64,000 nt of DNA from assembly GCA_965202585.1 (NCBI GenBank), contig CBDBBG010000262.1:1-64000 (forward strand), written 5' to 3'. The translations under genes were made by a program, and so were the position numbers. Under the pieces are notes generated by a model. The model was not told the origin of the DNA. It saw nothing but the letters and a program-made list of their open reading frames with translations, and did not search any database. Each line of letters starts with the position of its first letter. The first letter of the stretch is position 1. Source of the DNA: Thalia democratica (taxonomy: Eukaryota). Shown here piece after piece: positions 1 to 59,900 of the stretch.

Positions 1-2607
1 AGTTCAATCTAGTAGCAAAAGTTAATTTATTCAACCTATTATAGTTGAGTAACATAACCATATTAAGGCAGTCATACAGTTTCGTTGGCAGTCATACATT
101 TAAATAATTCTTTTAATGTTAAGTGATTAAGTTCATTTTTATAAGTATATAAATCTAAGGTATGTGAAAAATTAAAAGAAAATAATATTGAAAGAACTAT
201 TAACTATACTTTTATCACATGTTTTTAAATAAATTGAAATACTTAAGTCAAAGTTCTTTGAAAAAAACTATTGTTGAGAATCAAAGTATTCACACGAATT
301 TAGAAAACATCTGTTTAAAATCAATATTATCGATCTAAGCAAGCTCGAATATCTTGCGCGGTTGTACTTTTATCTTTTAGTGGTCTTCCTTTATTTTAAA
401 TTACGCTAAAAAGTAAGCTCCTTAAATCTACTTTATCAAAAGTATTTTTAAAAAGCAGAAATTTATGTATTTATATGTTCATTAATCATGGAGTTTTATA
501 ATAAACTTTAACTTTTGAAAAAAACTTTAAAATTATATTACTGTTAAGACTAGTTTACTAAAGTTTCCAAATTCTTATCTAAACAGTATTTATTTTATAT
601 TTTTATTTAAAGTCACTGTGACGTATCTATTATCAAGCTTTAATACATGTTAATATTATATTCTAATGCTTGGTTAACACAAAAGTAGTTGATAAATGTG
701 TACTATAAAAATTTTTACTTGAAAAAATTTTAGTGTATTTCTCGATAAATTTATAAAAATAAACTAAGTTTTAAAGTTCTTACTTTTAAGCATTTTAATT
801 AAATTAATTTTAAGACTTACTGAATAAGTTCAGCACAAAGTATGATACTTAAAAACTAAACAAAAATTAATTAAAAACAATTAATATTATACTGTAAAAC
901 TTTAGAATTTATATAACTTTCATTTGAAAAAATAAAAAATTTGTACAAAAGTTGCTTAATTAAAGTTTGATGATTAATTAATGTTTTTATTTTAAGCCAT
1001 TGAAAAACAATATCTTTTTAAATGTTAATATATCATAAAACAAATTTTTAGAAATTTATTAAATAATATAAACAAAACTGTATAATATTATCGAAATTTC
1101 AATGAGACATAAGTAAAATTGTTTTCAATTTTTATATATGTTTGTGTTCATAAATATTACATAACTTATTATAGTTTAATGTTGACTTAAACCATCAAGT
1201 TCAAATTTAGTTCTGGTTGCCAGTATTTTTTATAAGTTCTTATTAAAGCTAACCTAATACACGACATTAGTGTTCAAATAGCTTAACAAACATATATAAT
1301 GAATTTAAGAAATATGTCTAAAACAAATTCAACGAAGAGATCAGCTAATAGTATTTGTCCGATACTGTAGACATCAATTTTTAAATCGGTTAATTTTCCG
1401 ATAAAAACATTTAAGTTTTGTTATCAATAACAAAGTATTTGTTTTCATATGGAAAACTATTTCAAATATTTTAACTTAAAAGCTGAACTTTGTCGGTATG
1501 AAAACGTCGAAAGGGAGTTATTTATTTTTTTTATTTTAATCATTTTTATCTGGTATTTTTTTCAAGTTAAAGCAAAAATTAGTTCTTTTAACAATGGTTT
1601 TTCTGTAAGGACTTTTGTTTTTCAAGTTATTACTTTATACAGTTAATGTTTTCAAATTTTTTATTTTTATTTGCTTTCTGACAAAACAAACTACCTTATA
1701 GATATTTTTTTTATTTTATAAATTACAACTGAAGCTCTTCTAACTAACACTAAAATGAAACTTGTCTATTTGTCTCAATTACGTATACGAAATAAACATA
1801 AAAAAATTATAAACAAGTAAAAAAAAAGATAAAATAGAATTTTACAACCTTAACTGACATAATAGAAATAATTATAGCAGAATATCTATCAAGAAAGTGG
1901 AAACAAAAATGAAACAAATAAGTAATAATTTTGCGGCGTAGTTTCAATAGCCTTCAGCAAATTTAAACCAGTAATTTTTTTTTTGTTAAACAATGTAATT
2001 ACCGTTATTGTTTTGTTTAAAGCGTTTTATCAGTTTTTTTTACGCAGATTTTTCTTAACAAAAAAAGGTTAACTTATTTTAGATTAATGCTAAGTAATCG
2101 TAAATATAGATATAAAATGCTTAATCAAAAAGACAATAGTTAATTAAATACATATGTTTTTTTAAATAAAATACCAAATAAATACATCTAGTTGAATGAA
2201 CTAGGTTTATATGTAAAGTTATGAAGAAAATAATTGTACTCAAATCTAAACTCTGATTTTTTGTTGTATATCTGTTCACTAAGAAAAAATTTATTGTACT
2301 TAATTACTTTTCTCATACAATTTTTAGTTAAGTTAAAATGCATTTATTTTGTGATATCATTCTGCTTTAGTTTACTTGTGCTAGGCTTTTATTTTTATTT
2401 TACCGACAACTGTTTATTACATTCAGAAAGTTTCAATTGTCCGTTGAAACATCTATTTCCTATATACAAAGATTTTTATTTTAAACAACAAAAACCAATA
2501 CAAACAAATCAATTTAAAGGACTAACCTTAGGTACAAATGAACATAGATTTTCCACTTCAAGTTAATACTTAAAACTATAGTAGTAAATTAATTCAAACG
2601 GACTAAC

Positions 2608-2686
2608 CTCTGGTGCAGAGGCCTTCGTAGTAACCGGTTTCGATTTTTCACTTTTCGTACATCCAGCCGGAGTGCACGCTTCTATA
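2608..2686 (-). CDS. USH2A: usherin exon 49 (FN3)
   Basis: IEACTPAGCTKSEKSKPVTTKASAPE; phase 2 to 0; donor GTTAGT. Confidence 0.85.
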
Positions 2687-5600
2687 CTGTTTATTTTAAT
2701 GAATATAAGTTGATAATTTATTAGAACTTTGTATTTTTGTTATATATTTATACTTCATTGTTTTCTTTGTACTAAAAAATGTAGTTATGTTCGCATAAAA
2801 CTTTTAGTTTTTTGTAATGGTTTGTTGAAATAAAAATGAAAATATTTATATAAAACTACGGTGTAAACAAAAAAAAGTGCAATTAGTTTAAGTATTAAAT
2901 ATAGTTTATTACAGTTATCAAACGTAAGTTTCGAATAAATTTTTACCACTTATTTACTTAGATCAACAAAATAAACAAGGATTGTATTATTATAAGACAT
3001 AAACATTTTAACTTGTACGGTAAAACTAGTAAAATATAGTACAACTCAAGAAAAATTACAGTTTGTATTATTGAGCAAGATTAATATTTTTATCACATAA
3101 ATCAATACTATACGAGGAGCGATTAATTTTTAAAGCACAAGAGCATGCTGTAGTTTTGCCAAGTGTTAATTAAAGCAAATACATATATGTTTTACTTCAA
3201 GTGTGATTACTTATTTTGATAAAAACCAGACATTGTTAGCATTCATTTATAATTCTTTATAACATGCTTTTTTGTCAAATTTTTAATCGAAAACCTAAAC
3301 AAAAAAATACGTTCTTCAAAAACGTAAGTTTAAGAAAATTAAAAATAGGGTAAATTTATAAATGTACAATCTACTTTATTTTTTAAATGAATGTTTTTTT
3401 AGTTGTTAAATTATGTAAACTACTTAGTAAATTTTACCAATATTTAAATATTTTTTTTAAACTAAGTTACTAAATTTGTACAAAAGTATACTTTTCAAAG
3501 AAAGTGTAGAAAAAAAAAATTGAGTTTTGTTTTTTTAGTGCCTAGTTTAAAAAAAAACGAAGACCGTATGTTAAAAAAAACATGACGTCAAAATATGCTA
3601 TAAAGCATCAGAAATAAATGCTAACAATATCTGGTTTTTATCATATAACTTGGCCTAACGTAAAAGCTACAGCATAAAAAAGAATTAAAAGTTTGATAAT
3701 AAAAACTTATTTAATTTAGAGTAAAAAGTTATATAAGCTACTAGACTTGTAAAATAAATCAAGTATGAACTACAGTATAAATAAAACAAAACAAAACATA
3801 TAAATCTTTAGTTATTAATAGTCGAAAAAAACAAAGTAGTACAAGTAGTGAACGATTTAAGGTAAACATTTTTTACAGCATTTAAAAAAAAACTTAAATA
3901 TAAAATAATTTATTTATAAGCAAACATTTTTAAGACAATAAAAAAGAGCATTTATAAGCAAGCAAGAACAACTCTTAGTACAGTAACTAGTTTCTTACAA
4001 AAGTAAACCTAAACACAATGGACCAATAGTTAAAATTGTAAACTTGATTAGAACTTAAATAAATTCTTACTGCAGAGAAAATTTACAAAGTTTTAGCTAC
4101 AATCAAGTATACTACAAAATTAAAACAAACCTGAATGTGTAAGTAGTGAACGGCTTCATATTGTAAACTTCGTACTCAGTTAGATTTCCCGCCAACTCGA
4201 TCAACTCGCGATCGTCCAACCATAACTTGTATGACGTCACAATACCGTTGGGTGACGCTGGAGGCGACCACGTGACGTATATCATGGCTTGGTTGCGGTT
4301 GACTGCCTTTGGTGGTTCAACAAAGCTGTGGAGAAGTCGTAGTTGAAATTAGTTGTGTTTAGTATAACACCATCTAATAGATATAAACATTTCCTACTAT
4401 TTTAGCAAATACTTGGATAATAGTATTGAGGAATGTTTTTTAAAATTCAATTTCATCAGATATAAATTTTTAGAGAGAAATGGACTTAAATTAAGAGTTA
4501 AAAAATAAAAAAAAATTTCTTTTAAAACAAATTTATAAACGAAAACTCTGATTTATTACTGAATTTTACCAACCTAGGTGTAGACGGTAAGGTGAAAATA
4601 GAACTCCATTTACTAGGATTAGTTCCATAGTTATTAGAAGCTAATAGCTGAAATTCATATTCTCTGTATGGTAGAAGACCTAAAGATGAAGGGTGTAATT
4701 GCTAAATTGTATCTATATGATAACATAAAACTTCATTAAATTTTTAATAAAGAATTTATTGTTTTCATATAATCTAGACTCTAGGCTGAAACATATAACT
4801 TATAACTTTTATTTTATGTCTAAACTATGTAAAGTAGCTGAAACTAAGCTATTATAATTTTCTTAACTAAGTTTCTTCGTGAAACAAAGAAGAAGAATAT
4901 TATGTTTTGCACAAGAAGTTAATATTTCTTAAACTCGGATAAACCTGTCAGATTGTAGCTCATTTGCCGAGTATCTTCATCAAAAAGATGCACTTCGTCG
5001 CTCTGGGGATTTTTCTTTCTATATATCAGTTGGAAAACTGACTCTCCAGGTGCATTGTTTCTTGCAGTATCCTGAAAGTGTTAAAATGTTTTAAAATTCA
5101 AGTGTTTAAAAGTTCTTTATTTTACAATGTTTCTCCCTATTTATAGTATTTGGGTAAACATTTGCTTAAGTAAACGTTTTTTGATTGTGATTTTTTTCTT
5201 GGAAAAAGCTCAAGTTGAGAATTTAAATTGTTATAACATAATACGTATACAACAATTTTTATGCGTTTTCTGCATTTCAACTTTTTACAAACCGTTGTAT
5301 TTTGAAATGTTTTGATTACATTTAACAGTTTTGTGAACACTAGGTATTCTGTAATAACCCTTTTATCCAATAAAACGTAGAACTTACTTCATCTTTTATA
5401 TAATTTTAAAAACTAGTGAAATTTTACATTTTAATGGGATCTTTTAATATTTTACATAATTTTAAAAACTCCTAGTTATTTTTTTTTAATTTAATGTTTT
5501 AGTTTTTACGAAAAATATATATATAAATTTTGCTATAATGTTTTATATGTATATAGTTAATTTAACAACCTCCCACGAAGCGAGAATGGAGTTGGAGGTT

Positions 5601-29600: not shown

Positions 29601-32600
29601 TTAAGGTTCAGTGCTAAGCTTTGTGTGCACAAAACTATTACGAAGTTAAAAAATTGAGTTATGTTTAAATAGTTTGTTAGTAATTAGATTTAGATAGCCG
29701 TATCATGCAAGCATTCATTAACTTTTGAATTCATTAATTACACCTAACAGCAAATTAAGATTTGAAAAAATACTAAAACTTCAAGTTTCGTAAAAGTTTT
29801 AAAACTTAAACTTTAAAAGCATATAAAGTACATTGTTAAGAACATACACCATGCTTTCAACAAAAACAAAACTTTAAAATGTGTACTGTTTTCCGAACAA
29901 GCTGCCCATTGCAAGTTCAAAGAAAATCAACCTATATACTCTTGCATGACGATAAAATTAAAATCTGTTTACACATGTTTTATGACGTCACATCGAACCG
30001 ATCACAGTCATATTGTGACGTCACATCAAATGACAGTTACATTTGACGTCACACTCACGTTGCGAAGACATTTCAGGAAGCTCGATCTGATTTTCAACGA
30101 GGAAATTTGTCAGGTTTAAATTAAGCTCGTCTATTTGATCCTCTTCTAATTGTTCTTCCGCAGTGTTTTTCAATTCTTCTTCTTTTATAAAAAAATAAAA
30201 AACTACAACTACATTTCTACAAAACTACGTAAATTATACCAACGCTAAAACTACATTTCTTTAAACACTAGTACTACATAAAACTACAACTACTTTATAA
30301 TTTTTTATATTTAAACTAAAATTATTGTTTCAAACTAATCTATTAAGCCTTTTTTTTTAATGTGCATCGTAAAAGCCTAGAAATCTAAAAATTTATTCAA
30401 AGCTGTTGTGTTAAAAAAAATAATGATTAAAATTAAATTTTAAGCTTATACAAACTATACAAATATGTTAAAAACTAAATCATTTGAAGAAAATTACATA
30501 ATTTTCAATCAAAGTACTTAAACCTCCATAAACTCTTCCACAAACTAACTGATGAATCTGGCACCAATTTGTGCTCTTGTGGTTCCCTTGGGGTCCATCA
30601 TAGGTCCTGGGAGGTTTATCGTCGCTGCTGGAGTGCCGTCTTCACCTACTCCGTCAACGAACACCGACAACTTCGTCTCGCAAACCTGAGTTGAAAATAT
30701 TCTTCATCAGAAAAATATTAATGAATATACTTCCTCTATAATAAAAGTTAAGCCCGCGAACACTGACATTTTCACTACGAATAGTTGTATAAAAATAATG
30801 TTACAATAATAGCTATTCAGTAAGTTTTTTACTAACTTTGACCACACATATTTCGATTACAAAAAAGGTTTTATAGCTGAAAACTAGTTTAATTTTTGGT
30901 CTCTTTAATCAAAACATGCGTTTGAGTTTAGTGCATCTTGTATTAACGTTAATCTTTATACGGTTTAAACTGCTATAATCTTTATAATTAATGAAACATT
31001 TATTATATTGCCGTTACCGTTAACAAGACTGAAAACTTAGTCTGAACAATGAAGATGTGAAGATGGTAAAAAAGGGCTTAGAGACTGTATATAAAAACAA
31101 TTCATAAAAGATATAGTTTTTATTGCAGCTAGTCTGTCAAGTTTATAACACCTCAAAGTTAACTGAAACAATGAAAAATCAAATGAAGCTAACTTGCTGT
31201 CTAAAAAATGATCATTTCTGTATAAGCCACCTGCACAGCTATTGAAAGTGTAGCTTTCAAGTTAAAACTCTTTTTTTTCTACTAATTGTTAACAACCTGC
31301 ACGGCCAAGTGCTGCCAAACACCGGATTGAAGGGGAATCCCGGTGACCTTCCGCACCGGCCGCCCGTTGAACCCCAGGTACTCGATGACGAAAGTTCGCT
31401 GACCGACCATGATGGTCAGCACGAACACCGGCTTGCGACCCAAGAACACTTTTTGCAGGATCGTGCTGCGAAACATTAAAAACTATAAAACTTAATAGTA
31501 TGTAAGCAAATGTGGATAATTTATCAAAAAAAAAAACCTAGTTCTGTTAGAAATATATACGAATTAAGTATATTTTGGTCAACAAGGGTTGTCAATAATT
31601 TTTGAAGATCATTTTGAGCTGAAAATTTTTTAACTTTTTCTTTTTGATATATCTTAATCAACAGTATTTTCTAACTAACTAAAAAAAACATAATAAATTT
31701 TTTAAAAATAGCAGTTATAAAGTTATTTAATTCTAAGTTTTTTACGTTAATATTATAAGAAAGACAAAGCATCTACAACCGAATTTATAAAAAATAATTA
31801 TAAAAACTGTTATGAAAACGATGTTAAACTAATTAGTTAGTAAATGTTATCTTTTAGCTAAAATTTAATCGTATTTTATAACTTAAAGCCGTAAAATGTA
31901 AAGCCGAATACATAAAAAAACTCAGTAATCAAACAAAACTTTCCCTTACCCGAAATTGTTCTTTGCCTGGTTGATCCAAAGCGTCATGGTGAATGATTTC
32001 TGGAGTGCTTTCACCTGCGTTAAAACACAATAAAAATAAATAGATAAAAATTAGATAAAGGTGTACAACGGTTTCAATAACTTTAACTTCGCAAACTTGA
32101 TTGGTGAATGAAATAAAGTCAAATTGAACATAGTTAGGAATAAAACTTTTTATGCTTTTGAATATCTTGAATGCACAAACCTGTATTACAACATAACAAA
32201 ACCAAAATTTCAACACTCTGCATACCTGTGGATCGTTGGAAGTTTGCGACACGCAGGTCAAGCTCCTCCTTCCCACTTTCTGCCTGAACTTGAAAGCGGG
32301 TTCCGTTTTGATCTTCCTGTCGACGTAGGTCGGTTCCACGCACATGCCAGTGGCAGCCGACAGCAGCTTCACGAACCTGCGCGAGTGAGAATTATTTTAG
32401 TAATCGCTTTGAAGTGAAGGTAATGTTTATTTCCACGAGCCTTTGACAGTGGTAGCGGTGAACGGCTCAACAAATTCGATTTTAGAAAGTAAACATCGTT
32501 CATTTTTAACCAGTTCAACTCAACAAGCATTTTTGTGTGTTTTTAAGGTAGCGTTTATTGCCAAAAACACTACAACCTCATAAAATGAGAAAAAAAACTA

Positions 32601-33996
32601 CAAACTCGAAAGACTAAATAGAAAAAAAAAAATCCTTTGAAATGATGCAATAAAATTGTTGTTTAAATGTCGACTGTAGTAGTAAATACAAAAAAAAAAC
32701 ATCAACAATTTAATGGTGTTTAATTTTATATCTTAGAAAAAACAAGTTAAAAAAAAATTAGCGATAAAACATAGTATTTAACTTCTTTTTATTTACCTTA
32801 ATCTTATATATAAGGGTTTAAAAAAGTAGATTGTAGTTTAAAAAATGTACATAAAAAAAAGCAATATATATAAACCAAACTCTGGTTAAAGGTTTAAGAT
32901 TTTTGTCTTGCAAAAAATTTTTTTTTTAATGAAAAATTATAAAATTATATTTAACAAAAACTCGGGTTGGAATGACAAATTCTCTGTTAGCAACATTCAA
33001 AAGAATTTAAACACGAACTCAGGTTGAAATGTTTCGGATTTTTGTCTTTTAGGGCAGTTTTGATCGCAAATTCTCTGCTCGCACACCGTCTTGTCCATGT
33101 AGTCTTCTTTCTTATCTGGTGGGTGACAAAACTCCGACCTTCTGATGACACCGCAAGTGTCTGTAAATTGTTGTTTGTTGTTAGATGATTTAAACGTTTT
33201 TGTCATCAGTGGTCGATAGCTATTAAGAAATCGTAAATGGGTAAGTAACAGTAAAACTATAAAAAAGAGCATTTATAAAAACATGCCAAAAAGGGGGTTG
33301 TTATGAAAATAAGTTTTTAAAAGCCTAAAATAAATAGATTGGGTGCAAGTTTACTAAGTCTCTTCGAACATAAGGTGCTAAAAAATTTTACAGAATTTTT
33401 TTCTGTTAATTTGAAAAATATATATATAACTTGTTGAAGATGCCTGCTACAGTGGCTTAACTAACCTGTTAGGTTGTCAGCTTGATAAGATTTAGTAGAA
33501 AAAAACAACTATAATAGTTATACTAAAAAGACTATAATATAGTGGTTTGCTTTAATTTAAAAAAATTTAAGTAGGTTAGGCGAGAGTTTAATCAATTTAG
33601 TTAAAAATTATTTTGTAAAATAATTTAAGTGAAATTTTTTTGTTGGCAGATTAAATTGAAAATATTTACAAATGAAAAAAACTGTTTGATAGCAAAATGC
33701 TGATAAACTAATAAGAGTTAGGAATATATTGTCTCGAGATTTTATTACATACTACTATACTGCTCGTATAAAACTTATTAACCAACTAGAAATATTGACA
33801 GCTTTTCGAGGTTTGTTAGATGCTACTCATAAATGTAATAAACAAAACAAAAAACAATTACAAAACTCAACAACAAACCGAGGTCTTTTATTTCGACGGG
33901 TTTGTTTCTACCCACGTCGATTACTGGCGGCCTAGACAGTTTACCGTGGACCACCACAACCATCCACAAAAACAAAAATGCTAGTTTGTATCGCAT
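2608..33996 (-). CDS. USH2A: Usherin orthologue, 5' portion: 49 coding exons, 2,779 codons, continues off the left edge
   Basis: Exons join in consistent phase with GT-AG ends. Domain order matches human usherin. Diagnostic peptides include FCIQNGVSDTTEDRVSRLNEKAHPKEFINDGD (human YCIPNDAGDTADNRVSRLNPEAHPLSFVNDND), LYNDKPFR, GGGGVCDDC, RLCNSVGCVTS and TARNNAPG. No stop codon is reached. Confidence 0.95.
4131..4325 (-). CDS. USH2A: usherin exon 48 (FN3)
   Basis: YVTWSPPASPNGIVTSYKLWLD...MKPFTTYTF. Confidence 0.9.
4574..4679 (-). CDS. USH2A: usherin exon 47 (FN3)
   Basis: LLPYREYEFQLLASNNYGTNPSKW. Confidence 0.9.
4945..5071 (-). CDS. USH2A: usherin exon 46 (FN3)
   Basis: DTARNNAPGESVFQLIYR (human TPARNNAPGSPRYQLQMR). 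Confidence 0.9.
5570..5704 (-). CDS. USH2A: usherin exon 45 (FN3)
   Basis: VKAYNTAGH...SMPPGKPEGIPAPKL. Confidence 0.9.
6068..6211 (-). CDS. USH2A: usherin exon 44 (FN3)
   Basis: VICQGLFFAENV...IEGLMPFTDYIVK. Confidence 0.9.
6525..6711 (-). CDS. USH2A: usherin exon 43 (FN3)
   Basis: HEFRLKVCTTIGCS...RTLESAPEGEV. Confidence 0.9.
6713..7610. repeat. Intronic tandem duplication, two ~440 bp units (6713-7150, 7155-7610)
   Basis: Collinear blocks such as gtgttagatatttaca, gcacaaacatttaaaacaaact, ttgaacctgatttggtc and aaattaaacaaacaa occur in both units. Confidence 0.85.
7665..7792 (-). CDS. USH2A: usherin exon 42 (FN3)
   Basis: VSWSEPEMPNGKITLYTLY. Confidence 0.9.
8168..8385 (-). CDS. USH2A: usherin exon 41 (FN3)
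   Basis: LTAGTLYYVTLSACTYGGCTKS...ESIPEKVPAP. Confidence 0.9.
8736..8906 (-). CDS. USH2A: usherin exon 40 (FN3)
   Basis: SGQLPPNYVDQ...LRWLEPSVLNGVFKKYEI. Confidence 0.9.
9290..9446 (-). CDS. USH2A: usherin exon 39 (FN3)
   Basis: WKSPLHPNGVILNYTLYLNG...FKLEACTIA. Confidence 0.9.
9933..10183 (-). CDS. USH2A: usherin exon 38 (FN3)
   Basis: LTPDQEYLMTLRACTEENC...TPSEAPDDV. Confidence 0.9.
10472..10661 (-). CDS. USH2A: usherin exon 37 (FN3)
   Basis: VSSSNGGG...GVSWKDPVQSNGVV. Confidence 0.9.
11008..11408 (-). CDS. USH2A: usherin exon 36 (end of LamG2, start of FN3)
   Basis: DLYLGGYP...SFGGCMRMFRF...VDLDGC. Confidence 0.9.
11629..11789 (-). CDS. USH2A: usherin exon 35 (LamG2)
   Basis: IRICDKIWHHLTIENSQGVLRMELD; phase 2 to 1 fits both neighbours. 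Confidence 0.85.
12290..12622 (-). CDS. USH2A: usherin exon 34 (LamG1/LamG2)
   Basis: LVGCLKRF...WHGCPKNLNSDAVHFLGRGFLE...EFRTD. Confidence 0.92.
12883..13077 (-). CDS. USH2A: usherin exon 33 (LamG1)
   Basis: VIGANVGVYLGGIPDDF. Confidence 0.9.
13336..13485 (-). CDS. USH2A: usherin exon 32 (LamG1); alternative in-frame acceptor gives start 13479
   Basis: EYLVLQLRDGRPWFLFDTQ...KYNDGKWHKI. Confidence 0.88.
13834..14140 (-). CDS. USH2A: usherin exon 31 (FN3 to LamG1)
   Basis: KWDDPMKINGPLP...GVRFPGKSY...FKTLREDGLIFFTASP. Confidence 0.92.
14390..14534 (-). CDS. USH2A: usherin exon 30 (FN3)
   Basis: GFKPYTEYEFKMRLCNSVGCVTS. Confidence 0.92.
14842..15017 (-). CDS. USH2A: usherin exon 29 (FN3)
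   Basis: EPVFMPPPQLDPISSTDVNISWE. Confidence 0.9.
15344..15610 (-). CDS. USH2A: usherin exon 28 (FN3)
   Basis: GIIIQYELMMR...PPQTNFTVEDLVPFTEYEF. Confidence 0.92.
15967..16231 (-). CDS. USH2A: usherin exon 27 (FN3)
   Basis: FTNYTFVLRACTSGGC...LYVEWEPPERANG. Confidence 0.92.
16556..16799 (-). CDS. USH2A: usherin exon 26 (FN3)
   Basis: FNDTHLLPYTQYTYLLETSN...GPIETYVLQ. Confidence 0.92.
19982..20103 (-). CDS. USH2A: usherin exon 25 (first FN3)
   Basis: ELMWLPPDLPNGDQLSYKLMRD. Confidence 0.9.
20519..20649 (-). CDS. USH2A: usherin exon 24 (end of laminin-EGF 10)
   Basis: CECKGNVVGRKCSKC...SNPLGCYSHPQQQPAP. Confidence 0.9.
21020..21148 (-). CDS. USH2A: usherin exon 23 (laminin-EGF 9/10)
   Basis: VTGRRCDECKPSFF...CEKCECNEAG. 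Confidence 0.9.
21149..21640 (-). repeat. Array of at least 5 decayed copies of the usherin exon 23 acceptor and 5' end
   Basis: Variants of AACAG/GAGTAACAGGTAGGAGATGTGATGAGTGCAAA with AG at about 21248, 21345, 21401, 21529 and 21613. Confidence 0.8.
21960..22088 (-). CDS. USH2A: usherin exon 22 (laminin-EGF 8/9)
   Basis: GFYLPPKNESGCLTCDCHEAG...CDPVSGQCPC. Confidence 0.9.
22264..22377 (-). CDS. USH2A: usherin exon 21 (laminin-EGF 8)
   Basis: CDSNKGQCACLPSREGRRCDMC. Confidence 0.9.
22474..22660 (-). CDS. USH2A: usherin exon 20 (laminin-EGF 7/8)
   Basis: GCEPCGCDKRGS...GQCTCKHHVTGRTCNLC. Confidence 0.92.
22876..23081 (-). CDS. USH2A: usherin exon 19 (laminin-EGF 5/6)
   Basis: [27 protein letters not shown]. 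Confidence 0.92.
23372..23561 (-). CDS. USH2A: usherin exon 18 (laminin-EGF 4/5)
   Basis: SGQCLCKLNV...CDECKPGF...CLCDITGS. Confidence 0.92.
24802..24960 (-). CDS. USH2A: usherin exon 17 (laminin-EGF 3/4)
   Basis: IDGQCDCKPKVQSRRCNQCIDGYFNL. Confidence 0.92.
25230..25360 (-). CDS. USH2A: usherin exon 16 (laminin-EGF 2/3)
   Basis: GRFCERCKKNFYR...VCKKCLC. Confidence 0.9.
25946..26141 (-). CDS. USH2A: usherin exon 15 (laminin-EGF 1/2)
   Basis: CERCQPLYNDKPFR...GGGGVCDDCKHQTT. Confidence 0.93.
26641..26734 (-). CDS. USH2A: usherin exon 14 (laminin-EGF 1)
   Basis: CFCNGHAKSCD...PYQCGC...FTEG. Confidence 0.92.
27114..27211 (-). CDS. USH2A: usherin exon 13 (end of laminin N-terminal domain)
   Basis: HKYYAVKEVKIMGR (human HRYYAVDEITISGR). 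Confidence 0.9.
27522..27651 (-). CDS. USH2A: usherin exon 12 (laminin N-terminal)
   Basis: VTFSMLPAEPNGRPG; phase 2 acceptor AACAG at 27652. Confidence 0.88.
27903..28090 (-). CDS. USH2A: usherin exon 11 (laminin N-terminal)
   Basis: IYHVSVEFYNALP...WQEFSLDC. Confidence 0.88.
28390..28573 (-). CDS. USH2A: usherin exon 10 (laminin N-terminal)
   Basis: FCIQNG...DRVSRLNEKAHP...IDLHNGEYE. Confidence 0.93.
28853..29033 (-). CDS. USH2A: usherin exon 9
   Basis: QFLGMIQQVRWYKEALTNREI...SHCLCP...PRVHP. Confidence 0.92.
29315..29446 (-). CDS. USH2A: usherin exon 8 (putative lineage-specific insert, phase 1-1)
   Basis: 132 nt open frame EKKSKEASQTNLQF...GVNPLPGQ with TTGTAG acceptor and GTAGAA donor; no human counterpart recalled. 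Confidence 0.6.
30059..30181 (-). CDS. USH2A: usherin exon 7 (putative lineage-specific acidic insert, phase 1-1)
   Basis: 123 nt open frame EELKNTAEEQLEEDQIDELNL...EMSSQ with strong donor GTGAGT. Confidence 0.65.
30550..30685 (-). CDS. USH2A: usherin exon 6 (LamG-like N-terminal domain)
   Basis: VCETKLSVFVDGV...AQIGA (human VHQTKISFFINGV...VQIGQ). Confidence 0.9.
31297..31465 (-). CDS. USH2A: usherin exon 5
   Basis: TILQKVF...VWQHLAVQ. Confidence 0.88.
31950..32014 (-). CDS. USH2A: usherin exon 4
   Basis: KSFTMTLWIN (human ASFTLAVWLK). Confidence 0.85.
32226..32376 (-). CDS. USH2A: usherin exon 3
   Basis: FVKLLSAATGMCVEP; phases fit both neighbours. Confidence 0.82.
33019..33160 (-). CDS. 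USH2A: usherin exon 2
   Basis: TCGVIRRSEFCH...CEQRICDQNCP (human VCGLPDRSTFCH...CTQRFCIQDCP). Confidence 0.9.
33879..33996 (-). CDS. USH2A: usherin exon 1 (start codon and signal peptide)
   Basis: MRYKLAFLFLWMVVVVHG-KLSRPP: basic N-terminus then hydrophobic core; phase 1 donor matches exon 2. Confidence 0.8.
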
Positions 33997-35086
33997 TTTC
34001 GTTCGAAATTTTTATTTAATCTTCAAAATTTAAACACTTTATTTTTTGGCTAATAAAATAAAAACTTATTTTTAAAACACTTTAAACTTTTTCAATATAC
34101 TTTCAGAACTGAATGTTTAAACTAAGTAGGTAAAAATAAAACAAGCTATCAAAATAAAATTATTGTTATTACAACAATAAGTAAATATCCATACGCTAAT
34201 TCATATAAGTTTTTAAATAAAAGCACAGAAAAGATTAAACATTGACTATTTTATATGCAGTTTTTAAAAACTAACAGTAAAACAGACTACAGCATTAAAT
34301 AAATAACTTTTGTATTTAAGACTTGAACATTATTATCAAGACAACGAGTTTTTTTTCTGCGAAAAGTAAAGAGGTTTTATCTAAATTTAAATTATTAACG
34401 AACATTGCAAGTTTAAGCTGAATTATTTATAAATATAATGAAAATAAAGACTTATACGTTCGTTCAAGTTAAATTGCATTATAAATTATTAATTAAGAAG
34501 GCGAAACTTTATTAAGTTTATAGCTAGTCTCGACATATTTTTTGTTAAGTCTAATATGTAATGTAATTTATTTTAAAAAAACAACTAAAATGTTATAGTT
34601 ATATGAAGAAATTATAATAAACAGAAAGCAACTTCTTACAAAGTTTATAAAAGTAAGTTTATCTGAAAACTATTTCTGTAAAACAGTTATCGTGGATAAA
34701 AAAAAAACATTAAAACAAAGTTTTCGAAATCAAACACATGCATAATATAGCAATGCAATAAAAACAAAATGCTTACATAACTAGTTTAAATGTTGATCTC
34801 AATTAAAACGAAGTTTAGAATATTCAAAGTTGCTAAAAAGTAAATCTAACAAAAAATACATGATCTATTGTGTATGTCGACATTTGATTTATCTAAAAGA
34901 TTTTAATCTGATATAACAAAAAAAAAGTTTGAAACTTTATATTATAAACAAAAGTTCACATTGTGATGGAACTCAAAAATAATTACAACAAACAAATATT
35001 TTTAGCGGAAAAACAATGCTGGAAATTTCGATACAAAAACTCGAGTGGCACTTTAAACTAAATCAAGTGATCAGCTTACAATTAAA

Positions 35087-36100
35087 CACAATAAAATTAT
35101 GGCTATTTAAAAAAAATGAGATTAAAAAAATTAAGAACAAAAATTTTGTCAATTGACTTTGGAATTTTTAGGTTGGGTTTTTGTTTGGTGCTTAATTAAA
35201 AAGAACAAAATTGCTTGTATATATACACAAATCGCGTACATAAGCCCGGTTAAAAATTAATCTTTAATTAAATAAAAGAGTTTTTTTCTGGATAAAACTG
35301 ACTTAAAATCAATGCTTACTTATTTTTATATAAACAGACACAAAGTCAAATTTACACAAATTTAAAAAAAGTCAAATTAGTTACCAATGCGAGTTATGTA
35401 TACAACATAAGTCGCGTAGGTAACGAATCATTAGTTAAGTAAACCAGTTTATTGTGAATAAACATAAATTAAAACCAAAGATTTTTTTTATTTTTAAACA
35501 AACAGACAGAAACAAACTTTTCAAACTATATCAGTGAAAAATTTTTATAATTTGACTATTTTTTTTAATTTATCAAGCTATACAGGCTTGAACAAAATTA
35601 TTCGAACATGATTGGACTGTTATTATTTGACAACTTTATTTAAAAGTACAGCGAAATAAAATAAATACAGAAAAAAAAACCAAAAATATATAAGACAACT
35701 TAGTAAAAAGAAAAAAATTACTTGTTTGTAGGCTTAATTGTAAAGAAATTGACAAAAATAAATTATTTGTGTTGTATTGTAACAAACTATATGGTTGTTA
35801 GAAATATAAAAAAATTAAAAAGACTTGTAACAGCATTAATTGAAATATATGACAACAAAAACACTGTTATTTATTTATTCTTTGCTTTATCGTTAAAAGA
35901 CCAAGGTTTTATTAAAGTTTTAATCAAAAACTAAACTTTTCAAACTTGAGTTAATTGCATGGAAAAAAAATCAACAACAAATTGTTTTTGAAGTTTGTTC
36001 CTTCCATTGTAAGCATTACATAGCACAGATAGAAATATAGTCGAGAAAATAGTTATTGAAAAGTCTTCATATTTTAAATTTGGTAAAAAACTTCCCTTAG
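35087..36100 (+). mobile_element. Truncated 5' fragment of the Transib-like element (inverted copy of 55830-56918)
   Basis: Collinear reverse-complement match, roughly 90-95% by eye; homology starts at CACAATAAAATTATG in both copies and stops inside the transposase ORF. Confidence 0.85.
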
Positions 36101-37634: not shown

Positions 37635-38390
37635 AATGGAGTTGTTTTTTCAAGTTTAAAAGCAAAACTAAAAATGCCAGAAAGAAATAGTTATGATTTT
37701 CAACCAAAAACTTTGTATAAAAATAGATATTGCAATCAAGATGATTTCAGTATTTTAGTTTGTGGAGGACAGAATTAAAGAAATATATTATTAAATAGTG
37801 TTTATAAACTGAATGGTCGTGAACTTAAATGTAAAAAAATTACTTCATTGCCAAAAGAATTGGAGGAGTGTAAAACTGCTGAATTAATTCATATTTGTAC
37901 ATTTATAGTGGATTTTCGCATCATAGTAAGTACGACGATACAATTAGAAAGTTTTGTGATAAAACTAAAACTTGGTCATCTAAAACGCAATTATATATAG
38001 AAAACTGTGATATTTATCTTACTTCTTTTCAAAACAATTTATATGTAATTTATGAAGCTGGTATATGCTTGGTTTACAATTACCCAAACAATGAATGGAC
38101 TAAAATAGGTAAAATGAGTAAAACTAGGTGTTCTGCATCTTGTACAACTTTTGAAGGTAAAATTGATATTATTGTAGGTAGACATTTACAGAATGTGTAT
38201 AAATCAGTTGAAGCATATGACTATCATGAAAACAAATGGGCATATTTACCTGATATGATCAAAAGTAGATATATTCATGCTTCAGTTAGCATGGGTAATA
38301 AGTTGTTTGCAGTCGGTGGATATTCTATTTAAAGTAGTGAAGTATTTGACAATTATTCGAGTAAATTTACTTTATTTGCAACCTAGTTAA
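37635..38390 (+). pseudogene. Kelch-repeat (KLHL-type) pseudogene fragment, copy 1
   Basis: NRYCNQDDFSILVCGG, TFEGKIDIIVG, VEAYDYHENKWAYLPDM, SVSMGNKLFAVGG; interrupted by stops and frameshifts. Confidence 0.85.
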
Positions 38391-52628: not shown

Positions 52629-53270
52629 TTAATTTGAAAGAATTTGTTTTTGAATTATTCTTTTTAGCATACTGTAAAATATCTTTATATAACCTGACTC
52701 AATCAAATTATTTACAGTTTTGATCTTCTTTTCTGACCAAGTGTCATTAAAAACATCATAAATAAACACTTTTGTTTCTGGTGTAGAATATTTCTCAACA
52801 AAAACTAAAACTTTATGGCCGACAGAAACAGCTTTAAAGATTAATACATTCGTATCGACTATATTAGCAGAACTAATAAATGTAAATTTTCTTGAAAAAC
52901 TGTCAAACACTTCACAGCTTGTGGTATGTTCTCCACCAATAACAAATAACTTATTACCCATGCTAACTGAAGTATGTTCAATTCTTTTTTCAAACATATC
53001 AGGTAAATAGGTCGATGTGTTTTCATAAAAGTCATACGATTCTACTGATTTTAATTGATGACCTCCCGATATAACAATTTTTCCTTCAAAAGTTATACAA
53101 GCTGCATTACATCTTTTTTCTGTTGTGTCGGTCAATTTGGTCAATATGCCATATTTTAAGTTGTTCACAAAACATGACCCATTTCCATAGATTAGGTATA
53201 TGCTTTTCTTGAAGCAACAGTGAATAAAATGAATATTGCCTAGATCTAATTGCGACTTAAATGACCGAGG
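52629..53270 (-). pseudogene. Kelch-repeat fragment, copy 4 (214-codon open frame, 5' end disrupted)
   Basis: ACITFEGKIVISGG, VESYDFYEN...YLPDM, SVSMGNKLFVIGG, VFIYDVFNDTW; in-frame TAA at 53271-53273 upstream; no BTB/BACK domain seen. Confidence 0.8.
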
Positions 53271-54889: not shown

Positions 54890-56918
54890 CACAGTGGGCT
54901 GAAAACGTAGATCAAGTGGCCATTGACACAAAACTGTCATAAAAAGCAGTATAATTTAAAGAAAGAAACTTAAAAAAAAAGAAAATAATAATTGGCTACC
55001 TCAAGAGAGTCACATTTACTCCCATTTTAGTTTAAATATGAATGAATTTTCAATATCAAGCCGGGTGAAACTATACTCTAAATATAGTTTATTTTTAATT
55101 TAAGGCTGTTCTGTGTATATCAAAGTTTTTATTATTATTAACGTATATCATATGATTTTTTGCCAAGAAGTAGCATAACTGGACGACAAGTAGAGGCTGA
55201 CCCATGCCTCTTGTTAGTCAAGATGACTGTACCATCTTTTGTTGTTGCATTTTCAAATCTGAACATGTACATAATAATTTTACTAGTGCAGCATTATTTT
55301 TTTGGTTGAAAATAGAATGACCACCACTTCAATCCAAGCCATCATGAACTTTTAAATGTATTTCTTCTAAATTTTCTAGCTTTGATAGATTTATTGTTTT
55401 TACAACTGGTAGGCAGAATTTTCTAAAGCTTTTTTTACAATCATCTTTAATACCTTTGTATGGATCTTGCAGTTTTTCAAGTGGTGGTCTTTTTTCCTTT
55501 CTATATTCGTTAAGTTTATCATAAACTGGAAGGATGTCATGACCATCGTTTTTAAGAAGCAGCCTAATATCAATATACATTCTCTTGGTCATTTTTCCAG
55601 CTATTAATATGGCAAGTGCTGTTGACATGCTAACTGTATTGCTAACTTTGGCATCCTGCTGAATTAACTTTCTTCCAACATCAGCTGCAGCCTTGTCATG
55701 TAAATATTGACTTTTCAATCCTAAAGCAAACATTTTTGGTGGTGTAACGCCTTCTTCACTGGCAATTTCAGTTGTTGTGCTAGTAAATGAAAGTAGGCGT
55801 CTCCGTTGCGTACTTGGAGCAGCTTCATCTAAGGGAAGTTTTTTACCAAATTTAGAATATAAAGACTTTTCAATAACTATTTTCTCGACTATATTTCTAT
55901 CTGTGCTATGTAATGCTTACAATGGAAGGAACAAACTTCTAAAACAATTTGTTGTTGATTTCTTTCCATGCAATTAACTTAAGCTTGAAAAGTTTAGTTT
56001 TTGATTAAAACTTTAATAAAACTTTGGTCTTTTAACGATAAAGCAAAGAATAAATAAATAACAGTGTTTTTGTTGTCATATATTTCAATTAATGCTGTTT
56101 CAAGTCTTTTTAATTTTTTAAATATCTTACAACCACATAGTTTGTTACAATACAACACAAATAATTTATTTTTGTCAATTTCTTTACAATTAAGCCTAAC
56201 AACAAGTAATTTTTTTCTTTTTACTAAGTTGTCTTATATATTTTTGGGTTTATTTTCTGTATTTATTTTATTTCGCTGTACTTTTAAATAAAGTTGTCAA
56301 AATAATAACAGTCCAATCATGTTCGAATAATTTTGTTCAAGCCTGTACAGCTTGATAAATTAAAAAAAATAATAAAATTATAAAAAATTTTCACTGATAT
56401 AGTTTGAAAAGTTTGTTTCTGTCCGTTTGTTTAAAAATAAAAAAATCTTTGGTTTTAATTTATGTTATTCACAATAAACTGGTTTCCAATTCAATTCACA
56501 ATAAATATATTACTTCTCCTCCAGCAGTTGAGGTCTCTCTATTTGTTTTCTTAAAACCAAAACATATAATAAACTGGTTTATTTAACTAATGATTCGTTA
56601 CCTACGCGACTTATGTTGTATACATAAGTCGCATTGGTAACTAATTTGACTTTTTTTTAAAATTTGTGTCTGTTTATATAAAAATAAGTAAGCATTATTT
56701 TTAAGTCAGCGTTATCCAGAAAAAACACTTTTATTTAATTAAAGATTTATTGTTAACCGGGCTTATGTACGCGACTTGTGTTTATATACAAGCAATTTTG
56801 TTCTTTTTAATTAAGCACCAAACAAAAACCCCACCTAAAAATTCCAAAGTCAATTGACAAAATTATTGTTTTTAATTTTTTTAATCTCATTTTTTTAAAT
56901 AGTCATAATTTTATTGTG
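54890..56918 (-). mobile_element. Internally deleted Transib (RAG1-related) DNA transposon
   Basis: Left end CACAGTGGGCTG; right end is the reverse complement of CACAATAAAATTATG; contains a transposase pseudogene. Confidence 0.8.
55147..55930 (-). pseudogene. Transib/RAG1-core-like transposase pseudogene, N-terminal half
   Basis: KKLPLDEAAPSTQRRRL (NBD-like); ALAILIAGKMTKRMYIDIRLLLKNDGHDILPVYDKL; KVHDGLD*SGGHSIFNQ (TGA replacing the G of DGSGG); after a frameshift, SASTCRPVMLLLGK. Confidence 0.85.
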
Positions 56919-59900
56919 AAAAGATGTTTACACATATTCACACAATTTTTTTATGGCAACTATTTTTTTTATAGTTTTAAATTATTTTGCCAAACCTTAA
57001 TTGTTTGTAAACTTTTTAAATAACGTTTACGTGCAATAAGACCAGTATGTTAAAGACCAGTTAAAGAAATACTGGTTTAAACTCAAGTTAAAAAAATAAG
57101 TTTTCGCTAATGATGGCATACTTAACTTAACATTAAGCTATTGCTATAAAGTTTGATATGCATTTAGGATACTAGACTTAGTAACATAAAAATAGCAAAC
57201 ATCATAATTATTGAACGAAAATAATTGTTGAAACACGATTAACTAAATTAACATACGAGTAAGATCAGTTAACATACTTTTAAGATAACATAAAAAATAT
57301 TTTAAATATCTTACTTTTTAGTTTCAATTGCTGCAGCACACGTGAAAACTATCTGTTCATTTTGGTTTATGGAAAAGTGACGTAATAAATCAAGTAAAGC
57401 AATTTTGAATAAATTTGTGAACAAAAAGATTCATACAATTTTCTTAGCTAGAGGTTAAACAAAAACTTTTATATATAAAATTGTGAATCTCTTTTTAATA
57501 GAACTTAACGTTTTTACTTGAACTCAATTTAAAAAGTATAACTGATACTTTTGTACTTACAGTAGCTAGCTTTATATTTGCATTGCCAAAATGTATACAC
57601 AAAACATTTAAAAATTTTTTATTTATCATATGTAGCAGTTAAAAAAAAGTTGAAACTTTCGATAACTTTAACCAATAAACAATACTAGAATTTATTTAAA
57701 TTTGATTACAACGATTTTTTGAACTTAATAAATTACTCCTTTAGTTTTATCTGTCGAACCACTTGAAAGTAAAAGACTTTAACATGTATGACAGAAACAT
57801 GTTTATAACTTGCATGATAATGTGTCTGAAATCGACAAACAAAATTATTTTTTTAAACTGTTTTAGTTTTTTATTTATTTCGGCAGTTATTGGATTATTG
57901 TTACGTCATAATAAGGTTCAATGATAATAGGTTAATTATTCATTTAGAAATAGTATAGAGATTAAGAATATTAATTTTTATTCAATCCTAATCTTTTTTG
58001 CGAAACTTAGTAAAACTGAGTAATAAGCTAATCTATAATCTTTAATAGTAGTGAAATGACATTCGATTATCCTGAAAAAACAACAACATAAACTAAGTTA
58101 ATAACATTAACGTTTTTCACAATTTTTATTTTGACAACTGAAAAAAGATTTTATTTATTTTAAAATGTTATGTCTAATTTGTTTGAAAAAATTTTAGTTA
58201 CCGTTTACGTACAATAAAGCAAAGTATTATAAACTTTAAAAAATATAGGTTTACATTTAAAATTTAAACAACTTTTTTTGTCGCTAATGGCATACTTAGC
58301 GTACTTTAAACTTGTTTTATGCTATAAATTTGATATATATTCAGGATTTTAGACTTTTTTACATAAAACAGCAAACGTTGTAAACTGTTAAAAGAAATAT
58401 TAAACATTATTTAAATAATACTATACTCCTGACAAAAAAGCTATGATAGTAAAATGTATACAGCAAGTTTATGTTCTGAAGTGTGCTTTTCATTTTCAGA
58501 CTCCCTTTGTTTGTTTTTATATTTTATGATCAATCAACGCTATTAAAGTGAAAAAGGAGTATTACTGCTTAAGTGGTGTTGTGAAAGTTTTTAGTAATAA
58601 AAAGTCATCTACGGTAATAAACAAGTATCAACATACTTTTCCTTCAAAATTTATTTTATATCAACAATATTTTATTTGTTCATTAAAAACACATTATGAA
58701 CAAACTAATAACCTAAGTATTAAGAATGCTAGGCTTTTAATTATGTTTACTTAAATTATCAATAGACTTAATTAAGTCATAACTATTATTTAAAAGTTAA
58801 GTAATTTAGATATTTGATTAGTTTAGAACAAAGACATTTTCAGATAAGGCTATTAAAAAAAGATATAATTTAGATACTTTACTGTATTTTATTGAACAAA
58901 GCTTTGTTTGTAAAGGTATAAGTTTCATAAAAGTTAAGCTAAATAAAGTTTGATATATATTTTTTATTCATAACTACAAAAAGTAACAACACTACTTGCA
59001 CCTATTACAAGTATTTACTAATTTTTTTTTTTGTAGTTTCCTTTTCAAGTAATAATAACAATTAATATAAGTTGTTCTTAAATTATCTAGCTTATTAAAA
59101 GAGACTACTATATGAAATGGGCTATAATAATATATATTATATAATATAATAAATTGGATTTATAATCGTTTATATTTATTACTTAGATAATGATTATATT
59201 CAAAAATTTTTAAAGCTGCTTGAAATAAAAAAAAAATAAAACAGAAAACTAATTCGATGTATTTATACAAAAAAAAGCTTAATTGTATTAGTAAAAAAAG
59301 CAAAACTAACAACATTTTTTATTGTTGTATTTAAGGTCAATATTTAAGAAAATTATATGAAAATAATCATAAAATTAAAAAATATTTTTTACTCTTTGTT
59401 AATTTCTTTACAAGTATGAAACTTGCATCAAAATTTTTATTTCAATTGAAAAGATAATTTTTGTTTTTCAGTTTATGCGTTGCATTAGTAATTGATTTAG
59501 CGCGTTGAATCTGCTTGAGGTGGTTATAAACGTTTACTTATAGCCCTAATATAGTATTAGCAACAAAATATATTCAAATTGAAAAATTATTGATACAACT
59601 TTTCGTACCACAATTTATAAGCAGCATAGAAAAATATTAAAAAAAATCTGAATAACGTATAATGACAAATAGTTGTCTAAAAAACTCATGTTGAATAAAA
59701 ACCATTTTTTAAAATTGTTAAATAGATAATTTATTTATGTTGTTTTGCTATCAGCTATTTAAAAAAGTTACCTTACAAGTATGTTATCTACAATATGTTT
59801 TTATACTTATCATTCAAAACTAAACAGAAATAAAAAAAGCTTAAACAAAAAAAAAGTAAAAATGCCGACAAAAAACATACATAATATATTTGAACAATAT

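Follow-up and report, generated by a model that had tools for sequence, protein, structure and literature searches.

Within the 64,000 nucleotides of Thalia democratica contig CBDBBG010000262.1 that were analysed here (the window), the minus strand of positions 54890-55914 very probably represents what is left of a cut-and-paste DNA transposon from the Transib superfamily, a relic that is dead and immobile; the complete element of this family measures about 3.63 kb. The family carries a single intronless gene, encoding a DDE (Asp-Asp-Glu) transposase of about 710 residues with a RAG1-core fold, and is flanked by target duplications of 5 bp. More than 100 copies are present in the genome, most of them internally deleted and non-autonomous. 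The family transposase is homologous to the Transib/RAG1 core and has the defining characters of the Transib superfamily. The interest of the finding is moderate and lies with the family, not with the window copy, which is itself a routine relic and of annotation value only, its true limits being 54890-55914.

Translation of the minus strand yields, in this order, the motif LPLDEAAPSTQRRRL (55794-55838), resembling the nonamer-binding domain (NBD) of RAG1, the helix region ALAILIAGKMTKRMYIDIRLLLKNDGHDILPVY, GLD, a TGA stop codon, SGGHS, and then STCRPVMLL, which is the order of motifs that an earlier note on this DNA had described. An open stretch of 195 codons (55332-55916, minus strand) holds the first two of these motifs and ends with the residues HDGLD. 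Its last codon encodes the first catalytic Asp (55332-55334) and is followed by the stop (55329-55331), which a G-to-T change at 55331 has created within the GLDGSGG motif. Beyond the stop the sequence continues as SGGHSIFNQ and, after a change of frame, as IIMYMFRFENATTKDGTVILTNKRHGSASTCRPVMLLLGK. Alignment to other copies places a 1-bp deletion near 55289 (55289-55290), which shifts the frame ahead of the FRFENATTKDG...STCRPVMLLLGK segment, such that STCRPVMLL (55168-55194) is read in a second frame. The one stop and the one frameshift of the earlier note are both real, and the same alignment reveals in addition two indels that compensate each other (+A at 55436 and -T at 55403) and scramble 11 codons (55403-55436).

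These motifs are not a product of chance, since 55148-55914 is 94-97% identical in DNA sequence to other copies of one repeat family, full-length ones included, and since 54890-54927 is the 3' terminal repeat of that same family. A comparison with the majority sequence of four other copies shows 16 changes in about 770 positions (2.1%) of the window copy, among them the G-to-T change, the 1-bp deletion and the indel pair described above. Aligned to the best reference element (L021, described below), the window copy falls into three pieces: 55914-55148 corresponds to reference positions 1157-1922, 55144-54962 to 3295-3476, and 54955-54890 to 3567-3632. The first piece is what remains of the transposase gene, covering about residues 68-322 of its 710, with 86% protein identity to an intact family protein, P0056. 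The second is a 3' untranslated part of the element (54962-55144), and the third comprises its final 66 bp (54890-54955; 94% identity to the reference).

Three parts of the element are absent from the window copy, i.e. the first 1,156 bp, with the 5' end, the start codon and about the first 67 codons; an internal segment of 1,372 bp (reference 1923-3294), which encodes the second Asp, the Glu, the zinc ligands, the C-terminal domain and the CCGHC tail; and about 90 bp near the 3' end (reference 3477-3566). The junction of the internal deletion is marked by a 3-nt filler (55145-55147). The C-terminal catalytic half is therefore deleted, as had been claimed, and only the first catalytic Asp codon of the DDE triad survives. 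With one end only and no catalytic half, the window copy can neither encode the enzyme nor be moved. Internal deletions are usual in non-autonomous derivatives of cut-and-paste elements, and each of eight other family copies of about 2 kb has its own, different internal deletion of the same kind.

The sequence CACAGTG at the downstream end (54890-54896), previously pointed out for its identity to the heptamer of the recombination signal sequence (RSS) of V(D)J recombination, is a true terminus of the element. Together with 22 nt and the block GCCATTGAC it forms a 3' terminal inverted repeat of the 22-type (54890-54927, minus strand), with three mismatches to the family form, and this is the only end that remains in the window copy. 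In complete copies the 5' end consists of CACAGTG, 12 nt and GCCATTGAC, and the 3' end, on the other strand, of CACAGTG, 22 nt and GCCATTGAC; the fuller second block at both ends is (AAGYG)GCCATTGAC. Exact-pattern searches of the genome gave 131 matches for the 12-type end and 109 for the 22-type (38-nt) end, and none for the reversed control patterns of either. From the listed coordinates of these ends about 40 convergent 12/22 sets could be paired, most of them 1.9-2.5 kb apart, and no convergent 12/12 or 22/22 pairs were seen among them. All 12 complete elements in the extracted loci pair one 12-type with one 22-type end. Target duplications of 5 bp are perfect in seven of these 12 elements, and two more agree at four of the five positions.

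The same offsets of 12 and 22 nt recur in a related Transib family with a transposase that is about 55% identical, found on a 4.77-Mb contig of another assembled genome (L043:2962-6914; ENA ERZ25067903). The element on this contig contains an intact open reading frame (ORF) of 711 residues, is flanked by the target duplication CCCTA, and has the ends CACAGTG/CACAATG, with a related second block at 12 and 22 nt. These ends had been missed by an inverted-repeat finder and were recovered by a script demanding CAC...GTG together with a 5-bp duplication. The recurrence in so distant a family implies that the layout is conserved, and is no accident of one family.

The 195-residue piece of the window matches 35 places in the 802-Mb genome, with 70-91% protein identity, and a profile of relatives yielded 62 scored places out of 395 first-look candidates. 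Six long copies were extracted, the best reference being L021 (contig 5, C5: 55346816-55350447), which is 3,632 bp in length and has the 5-bp target duplication TATCG on both flanks. Its transposase frame (reference positions 956-3084) is interrupted by two frameshifts; outside this gene there is no ORF of at least 60 codons, and the 5' sequence comprises 955 bp of non-coding DNA. Besides such full-length genomic copies, intact genes do occur elsewhere, as the earlier note had considered possible. The intact family protein of 710 residues (P0056), which is 95% identical to the ORF of the long copy L003, is present on two environmental contigs (L044 and L045; ENA ERZ27290994 and ERZ17085152), i.e. 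in samples from the wild. The first of these contigs contains a complete element of 3,658 bp (L044:159-3816) with an uninterrupted 710-residue gene and perfect consensus ends of the 12-type and the 22-type. The flanks of this element form no 5-bp duplication, and it may be an assembly chimera between copies. Of sampled words from the 64-kb stretch, at most 21% were present in many marine/seawater metagenome runs and in few metatranscriptome runs.

Searches against the PDB placed the family transposase with HzTransib, RAG1L (RAG1-like) proteins and RAG1. The C-terminal ORF of L003 (455 residues) matched HzTransib (6pqn) with an E-value of 6e-16 and amphioxus RAG1L (6b40) with 2.4e-4, and RAG1 weakly. 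P0056 matched HzTransib with an E-value of 6.5e-24, and its best-scoring stretch (residues 162-393) overlaps the part retained in the window. A database search returned 49 relatives, many of which are 700-715 residues long and carry the precomputed Pfam domain PF26100 (RAG1_RNase_H). A profile built from 14 relatives matched HzTransib at 3.7e-56, BbRAG1L at 2.3e-42 and RAG1 chains at 5e-31 to about 1e-30. The original reading of the stretch as a Transib/RAG1-related remnant is supported.

In these alignments the GLDGSG, MVDGK and ESGLEANNK motifs of family members fall on the catalytic positions of HzTransib, BbRAG1L and RAG1. The corresponding residues D265, D365 and E630 are invariant in the alignment of relatives, and C677, C680 and H685 are nearly so. 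The alignments with RAG1 and BbRAG1L begin at profile positions 89-96, with ...RQQRRRL... standing opposite the NBD of RAG1 (GRPR...RRAQKHRL); the same region of the family profile also aligns with the start of the BbRAG1L chain 6b40_A. This gives substance to the NBD-like motif recognised earlier in the window. The C-terminal tail, of the form CX2CX3GHX4C, reads CTYCKEVGHTARSC in both L003 and P0056, and shows weak matches to zf-CCHC. Profile positions 402-452 face 12 residues in HzTransib, and align through in RAG1 and BbRAG1L.

Structural comparison was made with an AlphaFold (AF2) model of P0002, the closest intact relative outside the family (60% identical), with a mean pLDDT of 77.8. In a Foldseek search of the PDB the top 49 matches were all RAG1, HzTransib or BbRAGL, with TM-scores by target that are mostly 0.6-0.8, and the next match was P-element transposase at 3.9e-4. 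The model has short helices in the region of profile positions 402-452, a possible counterpart of alpha11-alpha12 of RAG1.

Several observations weigh against the assignment. Pfam RAG1 (PF12940) gave no direct match on the family ORFs or in the genome, and is reached only by a more distant ctenophore relative, from Mnemiopsis, at 1.4e-15. The protein pieces of the window, taken alone, gave no Pfam match (three pieces) and no significant phmmer match in the PDB, so that the assignment of the window copy depends on its near-identity to longer family members. Furthermore, none of the 62 scored places of the assembly (out of 395 first-look candidates) showed an intact ORF. Finally, a mechanism of nicking and hairpin formation, and a need for 12/22 pairing, would have to be taken over from relatives and from the observed pairing of ends. 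Judging from HzTransib, ProtoRAG and RAG, a dimer of the transposase would pair one 12-type with one 22-type end, would nick the DNA at the heptamer border and then form hairpins on the flanking DNA, and the excised element would be inserted with a 5-bp stagger.

Transibs have been divided into two subgroups, of which Subgroup I is nearer to RAG1L and has members from ctenophores, Hydra and bacteria (Tao et al. 2022, Natl Sci Rev, PMC9435367). Subgroup I is characterized by asymmetric spaced ends, an equivalent of the NBD, the alpha11-alpha12 region, and a CTT1 tail common to RAG1L (PMC9435367). With its NBD-like region, its CX2CX3GHX4C tail and its asymmetric ends, the present family would, on sequence grounds, fit a Subgroup I Transib. 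The Subgroup I Transibs of Mnemiopsis leidyi, Pleurobrachia and Hydra (Transib-9) likewise have a single transposase gene, asymmetric CAC-heptamer ends with a spaced second block, an NBD equivalent, a long segment where HzTransib is short (which in that paper is the alpha11-alpha12 region), and the CTT1 CCGHC tail. A Mnemiopsis Transib in the supplement of PMC9435367 has the TESGLEANNKFLR motif, as the family does, and the Mnemiopsis protein P0032 is 37% identical to the family (E 4e-68), but is without the CCGHC tail. The family differs from these elements in its host, apparently a pelagic tunicate, in having the canonical CACAGTG of the RSS as the heptamer of both ends, and in its offsets of 12/22 nt. 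Proteins with 37% identity stem from the transcriptome of the copepod Acartia fossae (P0027, EukProt) as well as from Mnemiopsis leidyi (P0032), a patchy distribution over hosts of the kind reported for Transibs before.

HzTransib of Helicoverpa zea (PDB 6pqn), a member of Subgroup II, is the best sequence match in the PDB, and its DDE residues and zinc ligands align with those of the family. As cited in PMC10462144, it also moves by cut and paste, makes target duplications of 5 bp and has ends with a CAC heptamer. Compared to HzTransib, the family transposase has about 160 more residues at the N-terminus, including the NBD-like part, about 40 more residues between the CxxC and the following His, and the CCGHC tail.

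It is very unlikely that the relic derives from a RAG-like (RAGL) transposon, i.e. one with both a RAG1L and a RAG2-like (RAG2L) gene, with nearby kelch ORFs as the RAG2L partner. The NBD-like region, the CX2CX3GHX4C tail and the long segment where HzTransib is short are all common to RAG1L proteins, and Foldseek puts RAG1 chains first by E-value. However, exactly this set of features has been described as Subgroup I Transib (Tao et al. 2022, PMC9435367), and in the PDB searches HzTransib came first by sequence, with a single query as well as with the profile. Complete elements have one ORF only, preceded by 955 bp of non-coding sequence, and in the reference element there is neither a second ORF nor room for one. 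Pfam RAG2 had no match in the genome, a negative of small weight, since the search was also silent in every control genome. The kelch ORFs at 52629-53168 and 37895-38332, which would supply the partner, were rejected as RAG2L, as they lie outside the terminal repeat, have a KLHL-type signature (Kelch_1 at 1e-11 to 1e-13) and are diverged host paralogs. The KLHL-type kelch-repeat segments of the window (37895-38332 (+), 40729-41059 and 52629-53168 (-)) are in fact diverged copies of one another (72-76%), and two of these border the inverted arms described below on their inner side. The linked RAG2L gene that the earlier note had in mind is accordingly missing.

The family shares with amphioxus ProtoRAG (BbRAG1L-RAG2L, PDB 6b40) and with other RAGL a homologous core (profile positions 96-668, 2.3e-42), the CCGHC C-terminal tail, heptamer-led asymmetric ends, and 5-bp target duplications. 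In contrast to these, it has no convergent RAG1L and RAG2L genes in its element, its spacing is 12/22 as opposed to 27/31 in ProtoRAG (PMC8355894), and in sequence it stands nearer to Transib than to RAG1L. Vertebrate RAG1 agrees in fold, with TM-scores by target of up to 0.78, and its NBD region aligns. The ends of the family resemble the 12/23 RSS in their identical heptamer and in a second element that is offset by one helical turn between ends. They differ from it in that the second block GCCATTGAC is not an A-rich nonamer and the long spacer is 22, not 23. Moreover, the family is a mobile element without a RAG2 partner, and nothing links it to antigen-receptor genes.

The earlier note had given the element an extent of 54890-56918, and had taken a second, highly similar copy as a sign of fairly recent activity. 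Neither of these could be maintained. Similarity to the transposon family ends at 55914, and 55915-56918 is low-copy host DNA that forms the right arm of a local inverted duplication and is joined to internal transposon position 1157, within the coding sequence, as found by alignment and copy search. The left arm (35087-36014) is also host DNA, and attached to it is an 86-bp Transib fragment with the same junction (36015-36100, plus strand; reference 1157-1242). The supposed second copy at 35087-36100 therefore contains only 86 bp of transposon. As it arose by local inverted duplication, it provides no evidence of recent transposition, and the same layout is found on contig 4 (C4). Copies of the adjoining kilobase were found at this locus, inverted at 35087-36014, at the same two positions in a colinear region of C4, and, with 75% identity, at C4: 68.85 Mb.

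A reading of the whole of 54890-56918 as one non-autonomous Transib, with 55915-56918 as a variant 5' arm bearing a heptamer-like CACAATA and with 35087-36100 as a second, transposed copy, is hardly credible. At its outer end the shared kilobase has, in the sense orientation of the element, the sequence CACAATAAAATTATG, CACAATG is a known heptamer variant of Transibs, and the two arms are 91-96% identical. Yet the kilobase is confined to this locus, its C4 counterpart and one 75% paralog, as against more than 100 real ends, and a second block at 12 nt is missing. The stretch 54890-56918 is not bordered by a 5-bp target duplication, with ATGTC and AAAAG on its two sides, and the transposon part begins at internal position 1157, in coding sequence. 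In the older paralog, moreover, the kilobase is continuous with the upstream host flank, and no Transib is present there. There is a negligible chance that the stretch serves the host as a gene of Transib-transposase origin, whether domesticated or still functional, because, despite the remaining open stretch of 195 codons, it has a premature TGA, several frameshifts and no start codon, has lost two of the three catalytic residues, and is one among many decaying copies with terminal repeats.

The arrangement of relic and host DNA, i.e. the Transib relic of 54890-55914 joined to a duplicated host segment, can be compared with two other regions of the genome. The first, C4: 60.206-60.235 Mb (60206026-60234999), is colinear with window positions 30001-60988 at 89-96% identity and has the same inverted arms. 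It contains the same Transib relic with the same breakpoints, differing by 4% and having only two of the 16 private changes of the window, which implies that the rearrangement is older than the split of the two regions. The window contig either belongs to a second, diverged haplotype or arose by a recent segmental duplication. The second is an older paralog (L042, C4:68848000-68857999; 72-80% identity), which is colinear with window positions 30604-36012, including the left arm and its upstream flank, and which has no Transib beside the kilobase. In this paralog the counterpart of window positions 57292-57580 resumes 47 bp after the kilobase. The block of about 21 kb between the arms (window 36013-57291), containing the kelch copies, a PARP-like gene and the Transib relic, is either an insertion here or a deletion in the older paralog.

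The window copy started out as a common type of non-autonomous derivative with an internal deletion, having lost 1,372 bp and gained the 3-nt filler. An illegitimate junction with host DNA next removed its first 1,156 bp together with the 12-type end, and this junction was later copied by the local inverted duplication, which took along a piece of the already truncated relic. The stop codon and the frameshifts were also acquired by the window copy. Aberrant Transib cleavage, by way of a hairpin fold-back, was considered as the origin of the inverted duplication and was set aside, as the junction is found inside the element, at position 1157, and not at a terminal repeat.

With respect to salps, the earlier Transib record is a Transib-like contig of 1,043 bp from Salpa thompsoni (MKHR01082902.1; supplement of PMC9435367). 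Compared by eye, this fragment appears to have similar Transib/RAG1L-like coding, reading as ...TPTVHKVLSHTWELIENN... where the family has ...TPTAHTVLAHSADLIDQNN... The fragment has no ends, target duplications or full ORF, whereas a complete family is now defined here, in a probable salp. As a check on the host, the tunicate cellulose synthase was looked for in the genome, with no match for GH6 and one marginal match for GT2. RAGL genes have not been found in tunicates (Yakovenko et al. 2021; PMC8355894), and this absence is unchanged, since the present family is a Transib.

Asymmetric ends, the CCGHC tail and the NBD are treated by Martin et al. (2023, PMC10462144) as already seen in Transibs, and an asymmetry of the 12/23 type in some insect Transibs is cited in PMC8355894 as having been reported since 2005. 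Because each feature of the family has thus been described in other Transibs, the family alone does not change the overall picture. It remains informative about RAG origins, as the earlier note had held, albeit with a smaller weight, since Subgroup I Transibs with these features and the salp fragment have been published (PMC9435367). What it adds is a data point to the debate on whether the asymmetry of the RSS came from RAGL ends or from Transib ends, as well as a natural, chordate-hosted pair of substrate and enzyme in which to study how unlike ends are recognised and paired by a relative of RAG1 that lacks RAG2. A more far-reaching interpretation is that a Subgroup I Transib, active fairly recently in a tunicate, and so in the group of invertebrates closest to vertebrates, was inherited vertically toward vertebrates and not acquired by horizontal transfer, and would be the nearest living model for the source of RSS-type 12/23 signals. 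We consider this unlikely. If true, it would tie the family to the 'Transib seed' idea (Yakovenko et al. 2021), and would offer a chordate system for studying the pairing of unlike ends by an enzyme without RAG2.

Some minor features were seen in the non-transposon kilobase. For this kilobase and for an 82-bp insertion in it, searches of Rfam and folding gave no Rfam match and no notable fold. The insertion (56486-56567) has no counterpart in the other arm; on both sides of it stands a 13-bp duplication, which corresponds to 35441-35453 of that arm. Positions 56500-56574, its 75-bp core, represent a short repeat of very high abundance, for which a search gave 1,055 first-look candidates at up to 99% identity. 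Elsewhere in the kilobase, positions 56593-56645 form an imperfect palindrome of 53 nt that is 79% self-complementary.

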